This document shows positions 1,682 through 9,864 of a stretch of 12,066 nt of DNA, in pieces (within the stretch, counting starts at the first letter, position 1; every line of letters starts with the position of its first letter). Below the pieces are notes generated by a model. It made no database searches and had not been told where the DNA came from. It was given only the letters and a program-made list of their open reading frames with translations. The stretch is from Vitrella brassicaformis CCMP3155 (taxonomy: Eukaryota; Protista; Chromerida). Made by a program: the position numbers and the translations under genes. The stretch is taken from the NCBI GenBank assembly GCA_001179505.1, contig CDMY01000901.1:1-12066 (forward strand), given 5' to 3'.

Positions 1682-2209
1682 GGGGCAGAAGCAGGCAGGC
1701 AGATCTGGAAAGGCGCTGCGGGAGACGGCAACATATAGGTGCCGCTTTGCGATCGACTTCGCTCCTGGATCAGTGGGCGCTCAACGTCGAGCTCTCTGAG
1801 TAGCCTCTGTGCGTCATGCATATGTCTGGCTGTCTTCTCGTACATGTGCAGCCGGTGTTGACAGTGATTTTTCTGACCGTCATAGGGTGGCACGTGCATG
1901 TCGAGTGGGTGGGTGGGATGGGTAGGCAGGCCGTGTGCATGCTTCTATGCATGTGCATGTTGCTAGTTTAGTGTGTGACATGGACAGGATCCCCTCCGGG
2001 GTTACAGACACGAGTCTCGTTAAACACAATAACCAATAACCAACCTCATATGACTCACCTAGCTCTTGGACGCCTGAAGAGACATCATGGCGAGGTTCTT
2101 GCGCTTTGTCCCTGCCAGTCTTCGGGTCTTGGCTCCTGCGGCTACAACAACAGCACAGAGCCTGCTAAGTGGCATCGGATGGCGAAGAAGCGACTATGCC
2201 ACGCCCTGA

Positions 2210-2839
2210 ATGTGTCAACCAACGGCGTTCGTCTCCATACCCCGCGACCAGCTCGCCAGGTGCATGAGGCGGGCCCCTAATGAGTCGGCGGGCGAAGAGG
2301 GGGAAAAAGAGAGAGTTCGACTGCAAGAATGGAGTCAGATGATGCACGAGAAGAAGGGAGAGAAGAGGAGAGATGAGCATACCTCTCAAGCTGTCAAAGA
2401 GCCTCGTGCGCCACGAGAGGGCGTCATCAAGAAGACTACCCAGGTGACGAACCCCAACGACTACACTCTTGGCCGTGCCAAGGGGACAGTGATCAGCAGC
2501 CTCAAGCGGAAGATATTTGTAGATGCCTTGAAAGAATCAAGTCGCCGTAAGTACAACGCCCTGAAGCAGCTGGATCCGACGCATGAGTTCGTGCAACGTA
2601 CCGATAAATTCATGGAGAACAAGTGTCGGACTGCGCAGTGCAGCAAGAATAGTGAAATCACTGACCGCACGAAGAAGGCTGCGATAGCTTTCACAAAAGC
2701 AAGGGCGACCGAAACGTCTGATCTAGAGTCTGCAATGTACGCATACACTGACAGAGAGGCATGATAGGAGAAACACAATCGCAAAAGCACGAGCGCACTC
2801 TACGGCATGAGTGATAGCAGCATGCGACAAACCAGACAC
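2210..2839 (+). pseudogene. Probable N-terminal segment of the interrupted SET-like gene (charged, K/R/E-rich)
   Basis: The 184-aa ORF 2210-2764 has protein-like composition. After a frame change near 2760 and a TGA at 2808, the frame VIAACDKPD joins TKKAHEDVQAV at 4594 once the CRE insert and one TSD are removed. The 5' boundary is unknown. Confidence 0.45.
2831..2839 (+). repeat. Left target-site duplication of the CRE-like insertion (accagacac)
   Basis: The identical 9-mer lies at 4585-4593, where CRE RT similarity ends. Confidence 0.7.
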
Positions 2840-4584
2840 GGTCTAACTGGCTGATCATACATCACCATATACACGACTGGCAGCTCAAACACAACCACAC
2901 ACACTATGCCGCCCAAACACAACTCACAACATCCACACTCCCACGACGCGTCCAAAACACACCGCTCACGGCCGCTCCTGGCATGCAAACGTGCGCGTCT
3001 GTGCCCCGCCCGCTGCGGTGTCTGGGCATCGGCCGTGCGATGCGTGCGGCAGGACACTTGAAAAGCATTCCATCGCATCAACGCCACCGACAAACACTGC
3101 CCCCAGTGATTCATGACACCCTCATGAAAAAACGCCGGATCTTCGGTAGAGCTGGCAGGTGATGGGACACGGCGCCGCGCCAGGCGGCGGAGTAAGGCAA
3201 GCATCTGTGCACCCCAGCAGCCGAACGTCTCCACCACCAAAGGCACGAACGTGTAGCCTTTCTGCCGACAGTTGTTGCCGTATTTGCGGTCCCTGTCGCG
3301 CTCTGCCCCCGCAGCCGCAGTGCCGCCCGGCTGCCGTGCGTGGCTGCGGTTGACTCGGGCGTGGTGAGGGGTGGAGCTCTCGGGCCGACAAAGATGGACC
3401 ACCGTGACATCGCACAGGCCGCCCTCGCTGTCGACAGTAAAGAAGAGGTCCATGCGCTGAATGTTGGGCTCGGCGTTGGACGGGACGATGTCGAGAGAGC
3501 GCAAGTGCACTTTCGTAGCAGCCGGAATGCCCACCTCCACAAAGATAGCGTTGAATACATCGAGCAGAGTGTTGTGCTTGAACATACGCTCCGCCGTCGC
3601 GCGGCTGTAGAGGAAAAAGTGGTCTTCGAGGGCGTCGATGGCCACGCCGCAAGGGCAAGAGGACGCCAGGTTGGCGAGGGGGAAGGTGAGGCCGAAGGTG
3701 AGAGCGGTCGCGAGGCGGTAGGCGTAGTTGTTCAGGCACTTGCGCTTGTCACCTCGGGTGTAGGCGGGGATAGCTGATAGCCAGCCCGACGACAGAGGCC
3801 CCAGGCAGGTGAGAAGGCGGCATCGGTCACGACTGCCAGCCGGAAAGGACTCGAACAGGGTGTTGAAATCCTTCTCTGCGAGGGCCTTCGAGAGCTTCTG
3901 CTGCAGTCGGGCTTGCGGGCGGATGATGAGCTGCTGGATGTGAGGGATGGCGACATAGGGGAGAGATGCAGAGAAGCCGGTGCGGGCGGATGCTGCCGGG
4001 ACGAGCCATTCCAGCTGGAGAAGAGAGGCTTCTGACTCGGGCATCCAGGGTTGCCCATGAAAATGGTCCCACACATCCCCCACAGTGACAGCTACCAATC
4101 CCAGATAAGCAGCCGGTGCGATGCGGGCAGACGACATCAGCCCGAAGTCCCCCAGCCGAATAGAGAGCTGCACCTGCCGGTCTGCCGGACTAGACAAGGC
4201 GCCCGTGCGGTGGATTCGGGTGAAGGCCGTGATCTTCGCAGCATCGTGTACACGGGCGGCTGCCAAGAGGGAAGACGAGGGGGCAAGAAGGCGACACCAG
4301 TAGATAAAGTGCGGAGACCCGCAATAGCGAAGCAGCGGGTTCGCCCCCTGCACCGCGTGGTCCCAATCGTCAACAGCAAAGGCCACCACGGCGTCGAGGA
4401 GGCGCTGGTGGCTGGCGACGACCTCGTTGATGGTGCGCTCGACGAAAGCCGGAGTGCCGATGGGGGCGGAGAGGAGGATAATCCTTCGGTGGACGCGCGC
4501 ACACCTCGACTAATGATGGCGGTCGGCAGGTCGACGGGTGAGCGCCAATGCGAGGACCAAGCATGGCACTTGTCGAGCCGCAGC
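2840..4584 (-). mobile_element. 5'-truncated CRE-like non-LTR retrotransposon (RT C-terminus plus restriction-like endonuclease), decayed
   Basis: Motifs in order: LRLDKCHAWS, (frameshift about 4482) ILLSAPIGTPAFVE, LSIRLGDFGL, SGWLSAIP, YRLATALTFGL, degenerate zinc knuckle CPCG..DHFFLY, KHN, RMDL..CDVTV (PD-D/ExK-like), RDRKY, PLVVETFGCWG, LSVALMRWNA. This matches the known CRE-clade RT-RLE layout. Flanked by a 9-bp TSD. Confidence 0.88.
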
Positions 4585-4593
4585 ACCAGACAC
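4585..4593 (+). repeat. Right target-site duplication of the CRE-like insertion (accagacac)
   Basis: Identical to 2831-2839. Confidence 0.7.
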
Positions 4594-4986
4594 AAAGAAG
4601 GCTCATGAAGACGTCCAGGCAGTCGCATCTGACAATGCCGGGGGTGCAAGGCAAGACTATCACCAGTACGTCGCTGTATGGAAGACTGCAACTAGCTTCC
4701 TAACGACGTCGGGGCATTCAAGCTCCTCAAAGAATACCCAGCATATTACGAACGGGCTGTCAAGGACCTCAGGGAGTAACACCTTCAGGTCATTGACTCG
4801 AACATCCCCAAGGCTGGCCGAGGCCTTATATCTCTTTTACCACTACGCGCATGTGACTCATTTCGAGGCATTAAAAGAGTTCTTCTGCCTGGCAACTTGA
4901 GCAGCTGGGTTATGCATGAGAAATGTCTTGAGTATCTGAAACGGGACCACAAGGAGCGATGGGGCCAGCCGACGACGTCGTACACG
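4594..4986 (+). pseudogene. Middle segment of the SET-like pseudogene, containing the SET N-terminal half
   Basis: TKKAHEDV...TATSF, a frameshift at about 4699, then PNDVGAFKLLKEYPAYYERAVKDLRE*(4777)HLQVIDSNIPKAGRGLISLLPLR...RWGQPTTSYT. SNIPKAGRGL matches the SET SxIPxAGxGL motif. This frame is absent from the supplied ORF track. Confidence 0.7.
4979..4986 (+). repeat. Left target-site duplication of the RTE-X-like LINE (cgtacacg)
   Basis: Identical to 6569-6576; removing the insert restores the reading frame. Confidence 0.9.
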
Positions 4987-6568
4987 GTTCGGTTCGGTAG
5001 TTAGTTAACGGACACCGAAGTCCTGGCCCCCGAGGGCAGATGCTGTGTCCAACCAAGCGTCTGTCAGATAGAGGAAACTAATGAAGGTGAGAGATGCAAA
5101 GAAAGCCATCGCTTGCGAGAAGCCACGGCCATCAAGAGAAACTGAGCCAACGCAGGTTGCACAGGGAGAGAGCGCGAAGTGAGCAATGACCATGCAAACA
5201 CCAAGGGATCACAATGGGTGAGATCCCACCAGAAAATAGACAACACCATCCGGTGCAGTCAAGCCATACATGCGAACAACACGAAAAACTTCCCTCCGCG
5301 GAAGACGATAGAGTGGGCAATAGAAAAGCACATGCAACTCATCCTCAACCGGCGGCACAAGCCATGGCATGGGCCAGCTGGCGGGAGAGCAAGTAGCAGC
5401 GCAGAATGGGCAGAAACACAATAGACGAGGCCGATCACTCAGCCGGCCATCAGTGACAGCACAAGTATAGGTGCCCATGCGAAATGAGAACAGCACACGC
5501 CGCTCAGCAGAGGGAAGAGAAAAATAGCATGGGAGAGTGGACAGGGGGTGATAAGACGATGAAGCCAATCCTGGCCTGATTCGAGGATAAAATCACGGAG
5601 GAAGGCAGGCACATATGCGGGCATAGAAACAAGGCAACTACGATCAAGGTAGCACTGCTGTGTATGAGAGGCAAAAACGCGACGAGCCACCGGGAATGTG
5701 TGAGGGAAGTGATGATTGAAAAATGCTGAGGCAGTGAAGAGGCATTGCCGTGCAAGTAAGAGGACACGACTGCGAGCAGTAGTCCTAGTGTACCCCGCCA
5801 TGGCAACAGACACAGAGGCAGTGGAGCAAGGGAGAGAGGTGAAGGAAGAGAAGGCGCATCACGCAAAATTGCATGGTTGATGTGAATGGACGTGTCCCAT
5901 TGTATAGCAAGTGTGTCAGAGTAGTACGCCTTTGTAAGGCCGACGTAAAGATCACGCAACACAGCGTCACCGATGGGACCCACATTTGAAATAAGAGTGC
6001 GATGACCAGCATAGCTAAGCAAGGCTGCAAAGCGAGTATACATGTTGTGATGCTGTCGGTACACGTACGTGTGATCTGGCTGCATATTCCTGAACTGGTT
6101 GGTCGATGTGTATGCTGCCTGGGCCTCCAAAAGGGCCTTTTGTGCCAAAGGCCTACAACGGCCATTCCACATACGACACAAAAACCCAAGCTGCCTGCGA
6201 CGCGTTTCGTACGTGACAGAGAAGCGGCCGGCCTCACTCAACAAAGCAACATTGCTGACACGAGACGACGCATGCATGGCACGGAGCAAGAAACGACGAT
6301 GCAGCTTGTGTAACTCCCGGCATGGCATGCCCGGCCAAAACTCGCAGCCATACAGATAGACAGACGACACAGTCGCATCATAGACAAGGAAGAGGGTAGA
6401 GGGGTCGAGACGAGGTAGGTGTTGGAGGTGATGAAGGGAGATGCGCAGTGCAGTCGGTCCCTTACCATTCATCACCTGCAAATGATACTCCCAACCTATC
6501 GTCTCATGGAACCACACACCTAAGTACCGAAATTGAGTGCTGCGAGGGAGAATAGTAGTGGGCGAGCG
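4987..6568 (-). mobile_element. 5'-truncated RTE-X-like LINE (RT thumb plus C-terminal CCHC), decayed
   Basis: FRYLG (6518-6532), VYDATVSSVYLYGCEFW, RRFLLRAM..SNVALLSEAGR, then after one or two frameshifts RRVLFSFRMG..DGR..PRLLCFCPFC..VEDELHVLFYCPLY (about 5310-5350). There is a short-repeat 3' tail at 4987-5008 and an 8-bp TSD. The clade is inferred from the EDExH..CPxY knuckle and the repeat tail. Confidence 0.85.
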
Positions 6569-6576
6569 CGTACACG
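6569..6576 (+). repeat. Right target-site duplication of the RTE-X-like LINE (cgtacacg)
   Basis: Identical to 4979-4986. Confidence 0.9.
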
Positions 6577-7131
6577 TTCTATGCGTTTGTGATGATCGAG
6601 GAGGGGACGGATTCAAGAGCTCAACATGGTGCGTTCCTATATACGAGCCCAGAGATCGAACCATTATGTCTAATCAACGTCGCTCCTCCAGGAGCAGTCG
6701 CCAGTGTGGCCATTGATACTACAGAACAACCGGGTGGTCACCGAAACGACGATATGTGGGTACCGGACGACAAACGTTTTGACGCCTTTCGGGAAGCTTT
6801 CTGTAAGGACGATCCTTTTCATTCGGAGGTCACGTTTATGGTGCCAAAGGACCATGCGGGTACGATAGCGCCAGGGACTGAGCTTTTGACGGATACGTAC
6901 AAGCTGGATAAACTCTGGAGCATGCAAATTGGTCCGAACTTTGAGTGATTGTAGTGGTTTTTACAGAACACTACTCTCGGAGGGCATAGTGAGTGAACGA
7001 ACATGGATGTGCTTTATGTCGGTGAACTTGTTACTTGACTCATCGTATAAGTATGATATTTCAATGGGAGGCCTTTATCTTCTTTAAGCCCATCAGACAT
7101 CCAGTGCATTGGCGCGTGGTGTGAGCTGGTA
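6577..7131 (+). pseudogene. C-terminal half of the divergent SET (PR-like) domain plus a stop-riddled downstream extension
   Basis: FYAFVMIEEG...EPLCLINVAPPG...GTIAPGTELLTDTYKLDKLW, open to TGA 6946. LINVA and IAPGTELLTDTY align with the SET (R)FINHS and IxPGEELxxDY motifs. Further in-frame stops lie at 6952, 6994, 7036, 7048 and 7054; the extension past 6948 is less certain. Confidence 0.7.
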
Positions 7132-7890
7132 TGTGAGTGGCGGCCGGCGGCACTGGGTGGTGCGCTCGGCTGTGCGGTGGATGGGGCTGGCATGCTTATC
7201 GCTGATTGACTGATTTGTCTATGTACGAATTCATGATGGACTGATGGACACATTTTGCCATTGCGCTATACGTTAACGTCTTGCGTTGATCAGGCTTCAT
7301 CCGATCTCCCTCCCCTACGCACGGCTCTCTCCCAGACAAGCATGTCCGTGTGTCATGAGTCGTCTCAATGCGTCGATCGTTCTCGACTGGTGGCGTCACC
7401 ACTTCACGCGAGGATTCTCAGACCTTGCAGCCATCCAATCGTGTGTGCACCTCTCTGTGCTGCCTCTCTTAAGAGCATGCACGTGTGTGTGCTCCTCCTC
7501 TCTCCCCTGTACCGGTGTGAGTGAGCGATCGCGTCTATGTCGGACAGCATTCCGCTGGTCGTCTCGTGGCGTCTCGTGCCGACGATTTCGATCACGACGC
7601 ACACCACCACCGTGTCCCTTGTTGTACTTGTTGTTCTTGCCCTTGTTATTGTCCTTGATGACACGCACCTTCTCCTTGCGCTCGACCTCATCGAGGTGGC
7701 TCTTGAGTAGCTCTGCGGCGCGCTTCATGCGGTGGCTGCTTGGGAAGAGGGTGATGCTGTACATCTTCTTGTCGTGCGTCAGCCGCTTGCAGTCCCAGTG
7801 GAGGTGGCCGTCGTTGAGGCAGTACTTGCAGTTGATGGATTCACCACCATCGGCCGCCCCTGCACCCTCGTCGACGTCCATTGGCGCAAC
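7002..7890. repeat. Copy A of an 889-bp direct duplication flanking the gap
   Basis: Offset 1189 from 8191-9079; 11 mismatches in 7002-7131 and none found in 7132-7890. Confidence 0.95.
7396..7890 (-). pseudogene. gag: Duplicate 3' part of gag (CCHC knuckle at 7789-7830), cut by the gap
   Basis: Identical to 8585-9079; may be an assembly duplicate rather than a second copy. Confidence 0.6.
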
Positions 7891-8190
7891 NNNNNNNNNN
7901 NNNNNNNNNNNNNNNNNNNNNNNNNNNNNNNNNNNNNNNNNNNNNNNNNNNNNNNNNNNNNNNNNNNNNNNNNNNNNNNNNNNNNNNNNNNNNNNNNNNN
8001 NNNNNNNNNNNNNNNNNNNNNNNNNNNNNNNNNNNNNNNNNNNNNNNNNNNNNNNNNNNNNNNNNNNNNNNNNNNNNNNNNNNNNNNNNNNNNNNNNNNN
8101 NNNNNNNNNNNNNNNNNNNNNNNNNNNNNNNNNNNNNNNNNNNNNNNNNNNNNNNNNNNNNNNNNNNNNNNNNNNNNNNNNNNNNNNNNN
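7891..8190. other. Assembly gap (300 N)
   Basis: Run of N. Confidence 1.
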
Positions 8191-9079
8191 AATGGATATG
8201 GTTTATGTCGGTGAACTTGTTGCTCGACTCATGGTACAAGTATGATATTTCAATAGGAGGCCTTTATCTTCTTAAAGCCCATCAGACATCCAGTGCATTG
8301 GCGCGTGGTGTGAGCTGATGTGTGAGTGGCGGCCGGCGGCACTGGGTGGTGCGCTCGGCTGTGCGGTGGATGGGGCTGGCATGCTTATCGCTGATTGACT
8401 GATTTGTCTATGTACGAATTCATGATGGACTGATGGACACATTTTGCCATTGCGCTATACGTTAACGTCTTGCGTTGATCAGGCTTCATCCGATCTCCCT
8501 CCCCTACGCACGGCTCTCTCCCAGACAAGCATGTCCGTGTGTCATGAGTCGTCTCAATGCGTCGATCGTTCTCGACTGGTGGCGTCACCACTTCACGCGA
8601 GGATTCTCAGACCTTGCAGCCATCCAATCGTGTGTGCACCTCTCTGTGCTGCCTCTCTTAAGAGCATGCACGTGTGTGTGCTCCTCCTCTCTCCCCTGTA
8701 CCGGTGTGAGTGAGCGATCGCGTCTATGTCGGACAGCATTCCGCTGGTCGTCTCGTGGCGTCTCGTGCCGACGATTTCGATCACGACGCACACCACCACC
8801 GTGTCCCTTGTTGTACTTGTTGTTCTTGCCCTTGTTATTGTCCTTGATGACACGCACCTTCTCCTTGCGCTCGACCTCATCGAGGTGGCTCTTGAGTAGC
8901 TCTGCGGCGCGCTTCATGCGGTGGCTGCTTGGGAAGAGGGTGATGCTGTACATCTTCTTGTCGTGCGTCAGCCGCTTGCAGTCCCAGTGGAGGTGGCCGT
9001 CGTTGAGGCAGTACTTGCAGTTGATGGATTCACCACCATCGGCCGCCCCTGCACCCTCGTCGACGTCCATTGGCGCAAC
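8191..9079. repeat. Copy B of the 889-bp direct duplication
   Basis: 8321-9079 is identical to 7132-7890; 8191-8320 differs from copy A at 11 of 130 positions. Confidence 0.95.
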
Positions 9080-9864
9080 AGCAGCACCGACGCCTATGCT
9101 CGCGTCTTGCCCTGGCGATGCCCCGATCATCGCCGCAGCTGTCTCGAGCTTGCGCACCCTCTCCATGGCATCGTCGAGGGTGACGTCGCTCTTGATGATT
9201 TTCTCGCTGATGGGCAGCTTGAAGGCCGTCGCACCACCTTGATGTAGGCGTGCTTGAGCGCTGTGGCCGTGAGCACCTCCTTCTGCGCATTGACCTTGCC
9301 GGCCAGGCGCTTGAACTCGCCGTTGTTGACCAGGGCCGACTTGGTGAGGTCCCAGATGAATGCGTCGAACTCATGTTGGGCTGAGAGCTCGGCGAAGACG
9401 GGGTTGGACTCCCTCTTAGCCTTGAGTCTCTTGAAGGCCAGCACACCGTCGAACTCGTCGTAGGTGTCCTTGACGCCTGCCTCGTATTGCTCGAGGATGT
9501 ACTTGGTGGAGCTGTCCTTGCAGGCGCAGACGAGCAATATGTGGAGCCGCTTGGCCGCTTGAATGGATGCCCTCAGCTTCTCCTGTTGCTTGTGAATTTG
9601 CTTGAGCTCCTCCTCCCTCTTCTCCTTGGTGTACTCGGCCGTGATGGGCTTGTCCTCGATCTCCTGCTCATGCGTCAGAAGCTCCTCGAGCTTCGTCTGC
9701 TGCACCGAGATAGGCACGTGCTTATCGAGCGCCGTGTCACGCAGAAGGGCAGATTCCTCGAACCCCAGCATGATGCGGAAGTACCGTACTCAATCAGGGT
9801 AGTCCTTCTCATCTCCGGAGAAGGGCGCTACGTCGCTGGTGCTGAGCTTGACGTAGTCGCTCAT
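8585..9864 (-). pseudogene. gag: Copia-type gag pseudogene, about 425 aa when repaired
   Basis: ATG at 9864: MSDYVKLSTSDVAPFSGDEKDYPD*VRYFRIMLG, with TGA at 9790-9792 where the W of the Copia FxGxxYxxW motif is expected. A helical body follows, then a 1-bp frameshift near 9237 (HAYIK to GATAFKLPISEKIIKSDVTLDDAMER), the CX2CX4HX4C knuckle CKYCLNDGHLHWDC at 8978-9019, and a basic tail. Codon usage is strongly GC3-biased. Confidence 0.82.

Follow-up and report, generated by a model that had tools for sequence, protein, structure and literature searches.

The question raised by this locus is whether a stretch of chromerid DNA conceals a gene of a well-known enzyme class. The window, i.e. the whole stretch of DNA that was analysed, is 12,066 nucleotides long and belongs to the Vitrella brassicaformis CCMP3155 assembly, which comprises 72,700,666 bases in 1064 scaffolds (PMC4501334). 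Positions 4780-6948 had been described in a first-pass annotation as a hidden gene which becomes readable when a LINE is excised at its target-site duplication (TSD), and whose product would be a divergent protein-lysine methyltransferase-like domain of the SET/PR type. It can be said with considerable confidence that the region is part of a dead member, split by the LINE, of an intronless V. brassicaformis gene family with multiple copies. The nature of the encoded domain is a separate matter and is treated with more caution below.

The excision concerns the following features:

4780-4986, plus strand: left piece of the conserved C-terminal domain of the family protein, ending in ...GQPTTSYT (69 open codons).
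4979-4986, strand not applicable: left TSD copy, CGTACACG, placed by junction alignment.
4987-6568, minus strand: 5'-truncated fragment of an APE-type LINE, consisting of the C-terminal region behind the reverse transcriptase (RT) and the 3' end, recognised by RT homology and a shared 3' end.
6569-6576, strand not applicable: right TSD copy, CGTACACG, placed by junction alignment.
6577-6948, plus strand: right piece of the conserved C-terminal domain, 123 codons and a TGA stop (open codons at 6577-6945).

The same 8 bp thus stand on both sides of the insert, and in junction alignments the 8-mer was found once in the uninterrupted site of five paralogous loci (C707, C381, C811, C778 and C795), with point differences in two of the five. 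These empty-site paralogues pick up the sequence exactly where the window restarts, at 6577; by blastn, C381, C707, C811 and C778 align to the window up to 4986 and again from 6569, with an overlap of 8-11 bp. Removal of the LINE places the 69 and 123 open codons in one frame, and the paralogous proteins read through the junction, from TSYT straight into FYAF (...TSYTFYAFEV...). Since five paralogous loci are uninterrupted there, the join is not a chance reading. The first-pass annotation was therefore right about the LINE, its TSD and the in-frame join, and the uninterrupted genomic copies which it had expected to join at the TSD exist at five loci, all of which do so.

The LINE insert is 1,582 bp long, and its 3' end, at 4987, terminates in GAACCGAACC without poly-A. 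The genome contains 39 matches to it, with a common end at 4987 and staggered starts, as is typical of 5' truncation. At C795, an 825-aa ORF with a full RVT_1 domain (E 2.1e-28) matches the insert peptide at 45% identity (E 7e-64) through its residues 539-792, a region just after that domain, and a longer copy of the LINE, at C436, matches the C-terminal end of RVT_1 itself (E 9.6e-7). Upstream of the RT ORF at C795 stands an Exo_endo_phos ORF (E 6.7e-5, 23.2 bits, slightly below the Pfam cut-off), and the same domain in C709 scores above the cut-off (E 1.5e-5, 25.4 bits). A PDB search with the LINE ORF returned no match. Because of the homology to an RVT_1 ORF and of the neighbouring Exo_endo_phos ORF, 4987-6568 is, as judged by homology, the post-RT tail of an APE-type non-LTR retrotransposon. 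The same insert was recovered at the same site in C298 and C992 (96-97% identity, with an internal deletion in C992), which indicates that the locus was duplicated after the LINE insertion.

The frame starting at 4780 is indeed open, but this position marks nothing other than a stop codon in front of it: TAA occupies 4777-4779, where the paralogues have CAA, and for this reason the frame described earlier begins at 4780. The ORF of the family begins at 2087, and its upstream part is arranged as follows:

2087-2680, plus strand: N-terminal part of the family ORF, starting MARFL..., with one in-frame TGA (85% identity to residues 1-199 of the C707 ORF; 5' boundary alignment).
2681-4590, minus strand: 5'-truncated retroelement fragment of another family than the LINE, with a 529-aa ORF (57 genomic matches; empty site in C707).
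4591-4779, plus strand: central portion of the family ORF, carrying a 1-bp deletion and a TAA (alignment with four paralogues; frame change in tblastn).

The C707 copy has a 371-aa ORF from MARFL, the first 199 residues of which match window positions 2087-2683, and it is contiguous across the insertion site of the 2681-4590 element. This second insert is 1,910 bp long and is bounded by a 13-bp TSD with one mismatch (cacgaagaaggct at 2668-2680 and cacaaagaaggct at 4591-4603); many of its 57 genomic matches have one common end and staggered starts. Its 529-aa ORF (2800-4389, minus strand) found no match in Pfam, NCBIfam or PDB. By eye this ORF displays motifs like those of restriction-enzyme-like (REL) endonucleases, namely an R-x-D-L run, then C-D-V-T-V, then F-V-P-L-V-V-E-T-F-G-x-W, and in these putative motifs it resembles R2/NeSL-type LINEs.

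With the 1-bp deletion, located between 4693 and 4694, the window copy is a multiply broken pseudogene (two inserts, one single-base deletion and two nonsense codons). The notion of a hidden single gene had to be given up, as the window contains one decayed copy of a family of at least 15 loci, with an ORF that runs from 2087 and was disabled several times. On present evidence the locus is a pseudogene with nested transposons, of an ordinary kind, and what had looked like a hidden gene is a single dead member of a repeat family. The C-terminal domain of this copy was split when a 5'-truncated APE-type LINE entered it by target-primed insertion, generating the 8-bp TSD. The second retroelement fragment, with its 13-bp TSD, was inserted earlier or later than the LINE, and together with the 1-bp deletion and the two nonsense codons it disables the copy further. 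Once the LINE was in place, the entire locus was duplicated.

A DNA search of the genome with the left exon gave 15 matches, and most of the loci carry stops or frameshifts. The unit is intronless and about 1.6 kb long, and the protein counted from 2087 would have about 450 aa, be charged in its N-terminal half and carry a conserved C-terminal domain of about 190 aa. The copies sit on small scaffolds rich in retroelements and repeats. Homology among them starts about 70-80 bp upstream of the ATG and stops about 155-175 bp past the stop codon, beyond which two flank types diverge; the downstream portion is one more feature of the window:

6949-7103, plus strand: 3' tail of the family unit, conserved as far as about 7103, where the copies cease to be homologous.

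These borders bear on how the family has spread. It could be a mobile or retroposed single-ORF unit of mRNA size, copied by the LINE machinery, and not the product of segmental duplication of a host gene family. The homology begins only some 45-50 bp upstream of the 5' end of an assembled transcript (L015, which starts 25 nt upstream of the ATG), introns are absent, the 5' ends are ragged and the 3' end is common, and the mostly degenerate copies lie among LINE fragments, all of which would suit such an origin. On the other hand, there are just two or three distinct 3' flank types, kilobases of further flank are common to some copies, which points to segmental duplication, and about 1.4 kb of upstream homology is common to the window, C707 and C903; neither a poly-A or LINE-like tail at the unit end nor unit-level TSDs were identified. 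Retroposition of the unit is considered possible but doubtful.

Several further observations were made around these borders. An AACATGC/AACACGC short tandem array occurs at 1638-1681, in the upstream region common to the window, C707 and C795. Downstream, a direct duplication (7003-7890 and 8192-9080, spacing 1,189 bp, 97% identity in the first 300 nt) has a run of N between its two halves, at about 7890-8190. It comprises roughly the final 100 bp of the family 3' tail and a CCHC zinc-knuckle ORF, and reflects an assembly artefact or else a tandem duplication. The ORF in question (193 aa, 8585-9166, minus strand) gave a weak CCHC zinc-knuckle match (E 0.0065) and has a family of its own with 22 matches, some with open frames of 480-660 aa. 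A fixed pairing of the two families was considered and rejected, as CCHC matches sit on contigs without the SET-like family.

Is the family a coding one? A JGI transcript of 4.8 kb (L015, sample 3300017148) is 99.3-99.8% identical to C1037, which demonstrates transcription of that copy. The expressed copy has a 360-aa frame (P0001) from an internal Met, with the MARFL start out of frame, and a full MARFL-to-stop frame is absent from every copy examined. Between family copies dN/dS amounts to 0.15-0.6 with an excess of third-position changes, and the 192-codon domain contains not a single indel between copies which are about 73% identical; on these substitution patterns, purifying selection among the copies is evident. 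The low dN/dS, the lack of indels and the transcribed 360-aa frame together mean that the family sequence is, or recently was, protein-coding. That repeat DNA contains this open frame by mere chance, with no protein encoded, could be argued from the lack of homologues beyond the species and from the very low confidence of AF2 models, but the selection pattern, the indel-free domain and the intact frame of the transcript contradict this, and such an explanation is highly improbable.

The transcribed locus has features of its own. C1037 (L011) contains two family copies in tandem; the 4.8-kb transcript begins as copy 1 and corresponds to copy 2 from nt 324 on, which suggests splicing between the tandem copies or assembly collapse. 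A satellite-like repeat of about 87 bp is present at the 3' end of this transcript and in L012/L020. About 300 bp downstream of the C795 copy there are three units of the telomere-type repeat TTTAGGG (L010 3217-3237, i.e. C795 at about 17216-17236). A subtelomeric location of the family was nevertheless rejected, as this three-unit run by the C795 copy is the only one, with none in the window or at other loci.

Outside the genome, a word search of 5.8 billion proteins recovered P0001 alone, i.e. the product of the same-species transcript, and a profile HMM search of 1.84 billion representative proteins recovered three short fragments, all of the same family. One of the three (P0003) comes from a degenerate stretch, about 300 bp long, of an ENA metagenome contig (L055; ERZ893784 contig k147_5313311, 3954-4356, GC 54%), and its identity to the Vitrella copies does not exceed 66%. 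The source of this contig is probably a related chromerid-like organism. The flanks of the fragment have diverged, and one stretch, discussed below as a putative NH loop, is nearly unchanged. Pattern scans of viral and JGI metagenome contigs revealed no relatives of the family. As far as these searches reach, the degenerate metagenome fragment is the only relative found beyond the DNA and transcripts of the Vitrella genome itself.

The second part of the question concerns the identity of the C-terminal domain. SET domains possess an N-terminal GxG motif of the AdoMet pocket followed by a hydrophobic strand, an NH(S)xC loop, a C-terminal ELxF/YDY with the catalytic Tyr, and a beta-fold with a pseudoknot. 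The first-pass annotation had recognised such motifs in the joined frame and assigned it to the SET/PR type; in the searches described here each exon was used separately, together with natural uninterrupted paralogues (L010, L014 and P0001), in place of the joined peptide.

Direct recognition failed throughout. Neither exon, and none of four intact or longer paralogues, matched Pfam at E<=10, NCBIfam and PHROGs gave no match, and PDB searches by sequence and by profile gave none for the family. A six-frame scan of the whole genome with PF00856 (E<=10) produced 46 matches, of which zero fell in family copies; the corresponding scan with PF21549 (PRDM2_PR, E<=10) produced 0, but its controls were equally silent. 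Two AF2 runs reached pLDDT 36.3 and 39.3, models too poor to count for or against any fold, and with these models as queries Foldseek gave nothing at E<=0.001, while the matches listed contained no SET chain, a result which is meaningless at such model quality.

More sensitive comparisons gave a graded picture. A SET HMM built for this work (HMMER, --max) scored -0.4 to -1.6 bits (P 0.03-0.09 against shuffles), an ungapped block test gave P 0.03-0.1, with blocks that did not all land on the motifs named in the first reading, and global hhalign against SET showed no signal, its score being reached by 68 of 100 shuffles. Local hhalign behaved differently, and its best matches to three SET profiles sit on the hallmark motifs in colinear order. 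Against a seven-sequence SET8-like profile, TIPPGRELVTD was paired with DVDKGDELLVD (P 0.091, score reached by 10 of 120 shuffles); against a 14-sequence SET profile including giant-virus SETs the GxG region scored best (P 0.0086, reached by none of 150 column shuffles); and against the giant-virus SET-like subfamily alone P was 0.011 (2 of 150 shuffles). With a Vitrella SET domain the NH-loop pairing was chosen, at P 0.35. When the alignment to the 14-sequence profile was relaxed, all four hallmarks appeared in order, namely GxG, a Y-F strand, an (I/V)N-x-(A/S) loop and I-x-x-G-x-E-L-L-x-D. In a feature search of the ESM Atlas with P0001, SET clusters made up 25 of the 30 nearest, some with PRDM2_PR, at scores of 0.92-0.94, with a recognition value (2048) below the tool's threshold and fewer than 170 shared features; the 225-aa L010 paralogue gave no usable match there.

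The motifs themselves are conserved to different degrees. The first is AGRG in the window, C778 and C1037, and ADRG in C795 and C707. The putative NH-loop region is the best conserved stretch of the whole family, the metagenome fragment included, and it reads L-I/V-N-V-A-P, with the Asn kept and the His and Cys of canonical NHxC absent in all copies. At the C-terminal end E-L-L/V-T-D-T-Y is invariant across the family and aligns with GEELLxDY over 11 columns (P 0.09 and 0.011), with the Tyr shifted by one position.

The resemblance of motifs noted in the first-pass annotation is thus a weak hint, colinear and with hhalign P values of 0.09-0.009, and the SET/PR identity which it had deduced from them is unproven rather than refuted, with no Pfam, PDB or genome-scan match at E<=10 and with AF2 models too poor to judge the fold. 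The hints are discounted further because the Atlas values fall in the weak range of the tool, because the L010 paralogue gave no usable Atlas match, because the canonical His and Cys are missing and the final Tyr is offset, and because the motifs behind the scores are those from which the hypothesis arose. On balance, it is somewhat unlikely that a divergent domain, SET/PR-like and protein-lysine methyltransferase-like, with 45 aa inserted between NxA and ELxxD(x)Y, is encoded by the joined frame, and whatever that frame encoded, the gene is dead at the window locus. For the family as a whole, derivation of the C-terminal domain from a very divergent SET fold may be entertained tentatively. 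If it is so derived, a degenerate or PR-like binding module would be more likely than an active lysine methyltransferase, because the canonical NH(S)C histidine is absent. The fullest version appears unlikely; in it the domain would be a true but extremely divergent one of the SET/PR type, in which N-x-A replaces NH and about 45 conserved residues are inserted before the C-terminal motif. Its carrier would be a multicopy and possibly retroposed unit in a free-living relative of apicomplexans, perhaps with a link to the small SET-like proteins of giant viruses.

Notwithstanding this, the family is a clean case of an orphan family under purifying selection which current profile and structure-prediction tools cannot place. 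A SET origin, if proved, would make the domain a PR-like variant of SET outside animals, amplified to many copies in a chromerid, and would bear on the recruitment of chromatin-modifier folds by selfish or lineage-specific families near the origin of apicomplexans.

Comparison with known systems can be made at four levels. The insert behaves like other APE-type LINE insertions in its short TSD, common 3' end, 5' ends staggered across copies and homology to an RVT_1 ORF adjoining an Exo_endo_phos ORF, and it differs from them in having a short GAACC repeat as its 3' end instead of a poly-A tail. To SET (PF00856) and PR (PF21549) domains the Vitrella domain bears a colinear resemblance at the level of motifs, with S-x-I-P-x-A-G-R-G close to its start, a Y-x-F-Y strand that follows a helix, the (I/V)-N-x-A loop and, towards the end, I-x-P-G-x-E-L-L-x-D-x-Y, and its length of some 190 aa would fit once room is made for an insert; in contrast to them it has no significant profile match, lacks the H and C of NHxC, has its final Tyr offset by one and contains, after the loop, about 45 extra residues before the C-terminal motif begins. 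In giant viruses (Nucleocytoviricota), small SET-like proteins (L056, L057, L060, L061 and L070) are recognised in tblastn with the SET8-like profile (E 1e-5 to 2e-8), which the Vitrella family is not, but they are its nearest named neighbours in the language-model search and have a similar degenerate NH loop (VNS[YH]INI) and GEELLIDYG end. Finally, in its many paralogues, mostly pseudogenes on small repeat-rich scaffolds, the family resembles the lineage-specific orphan families of alveolates.
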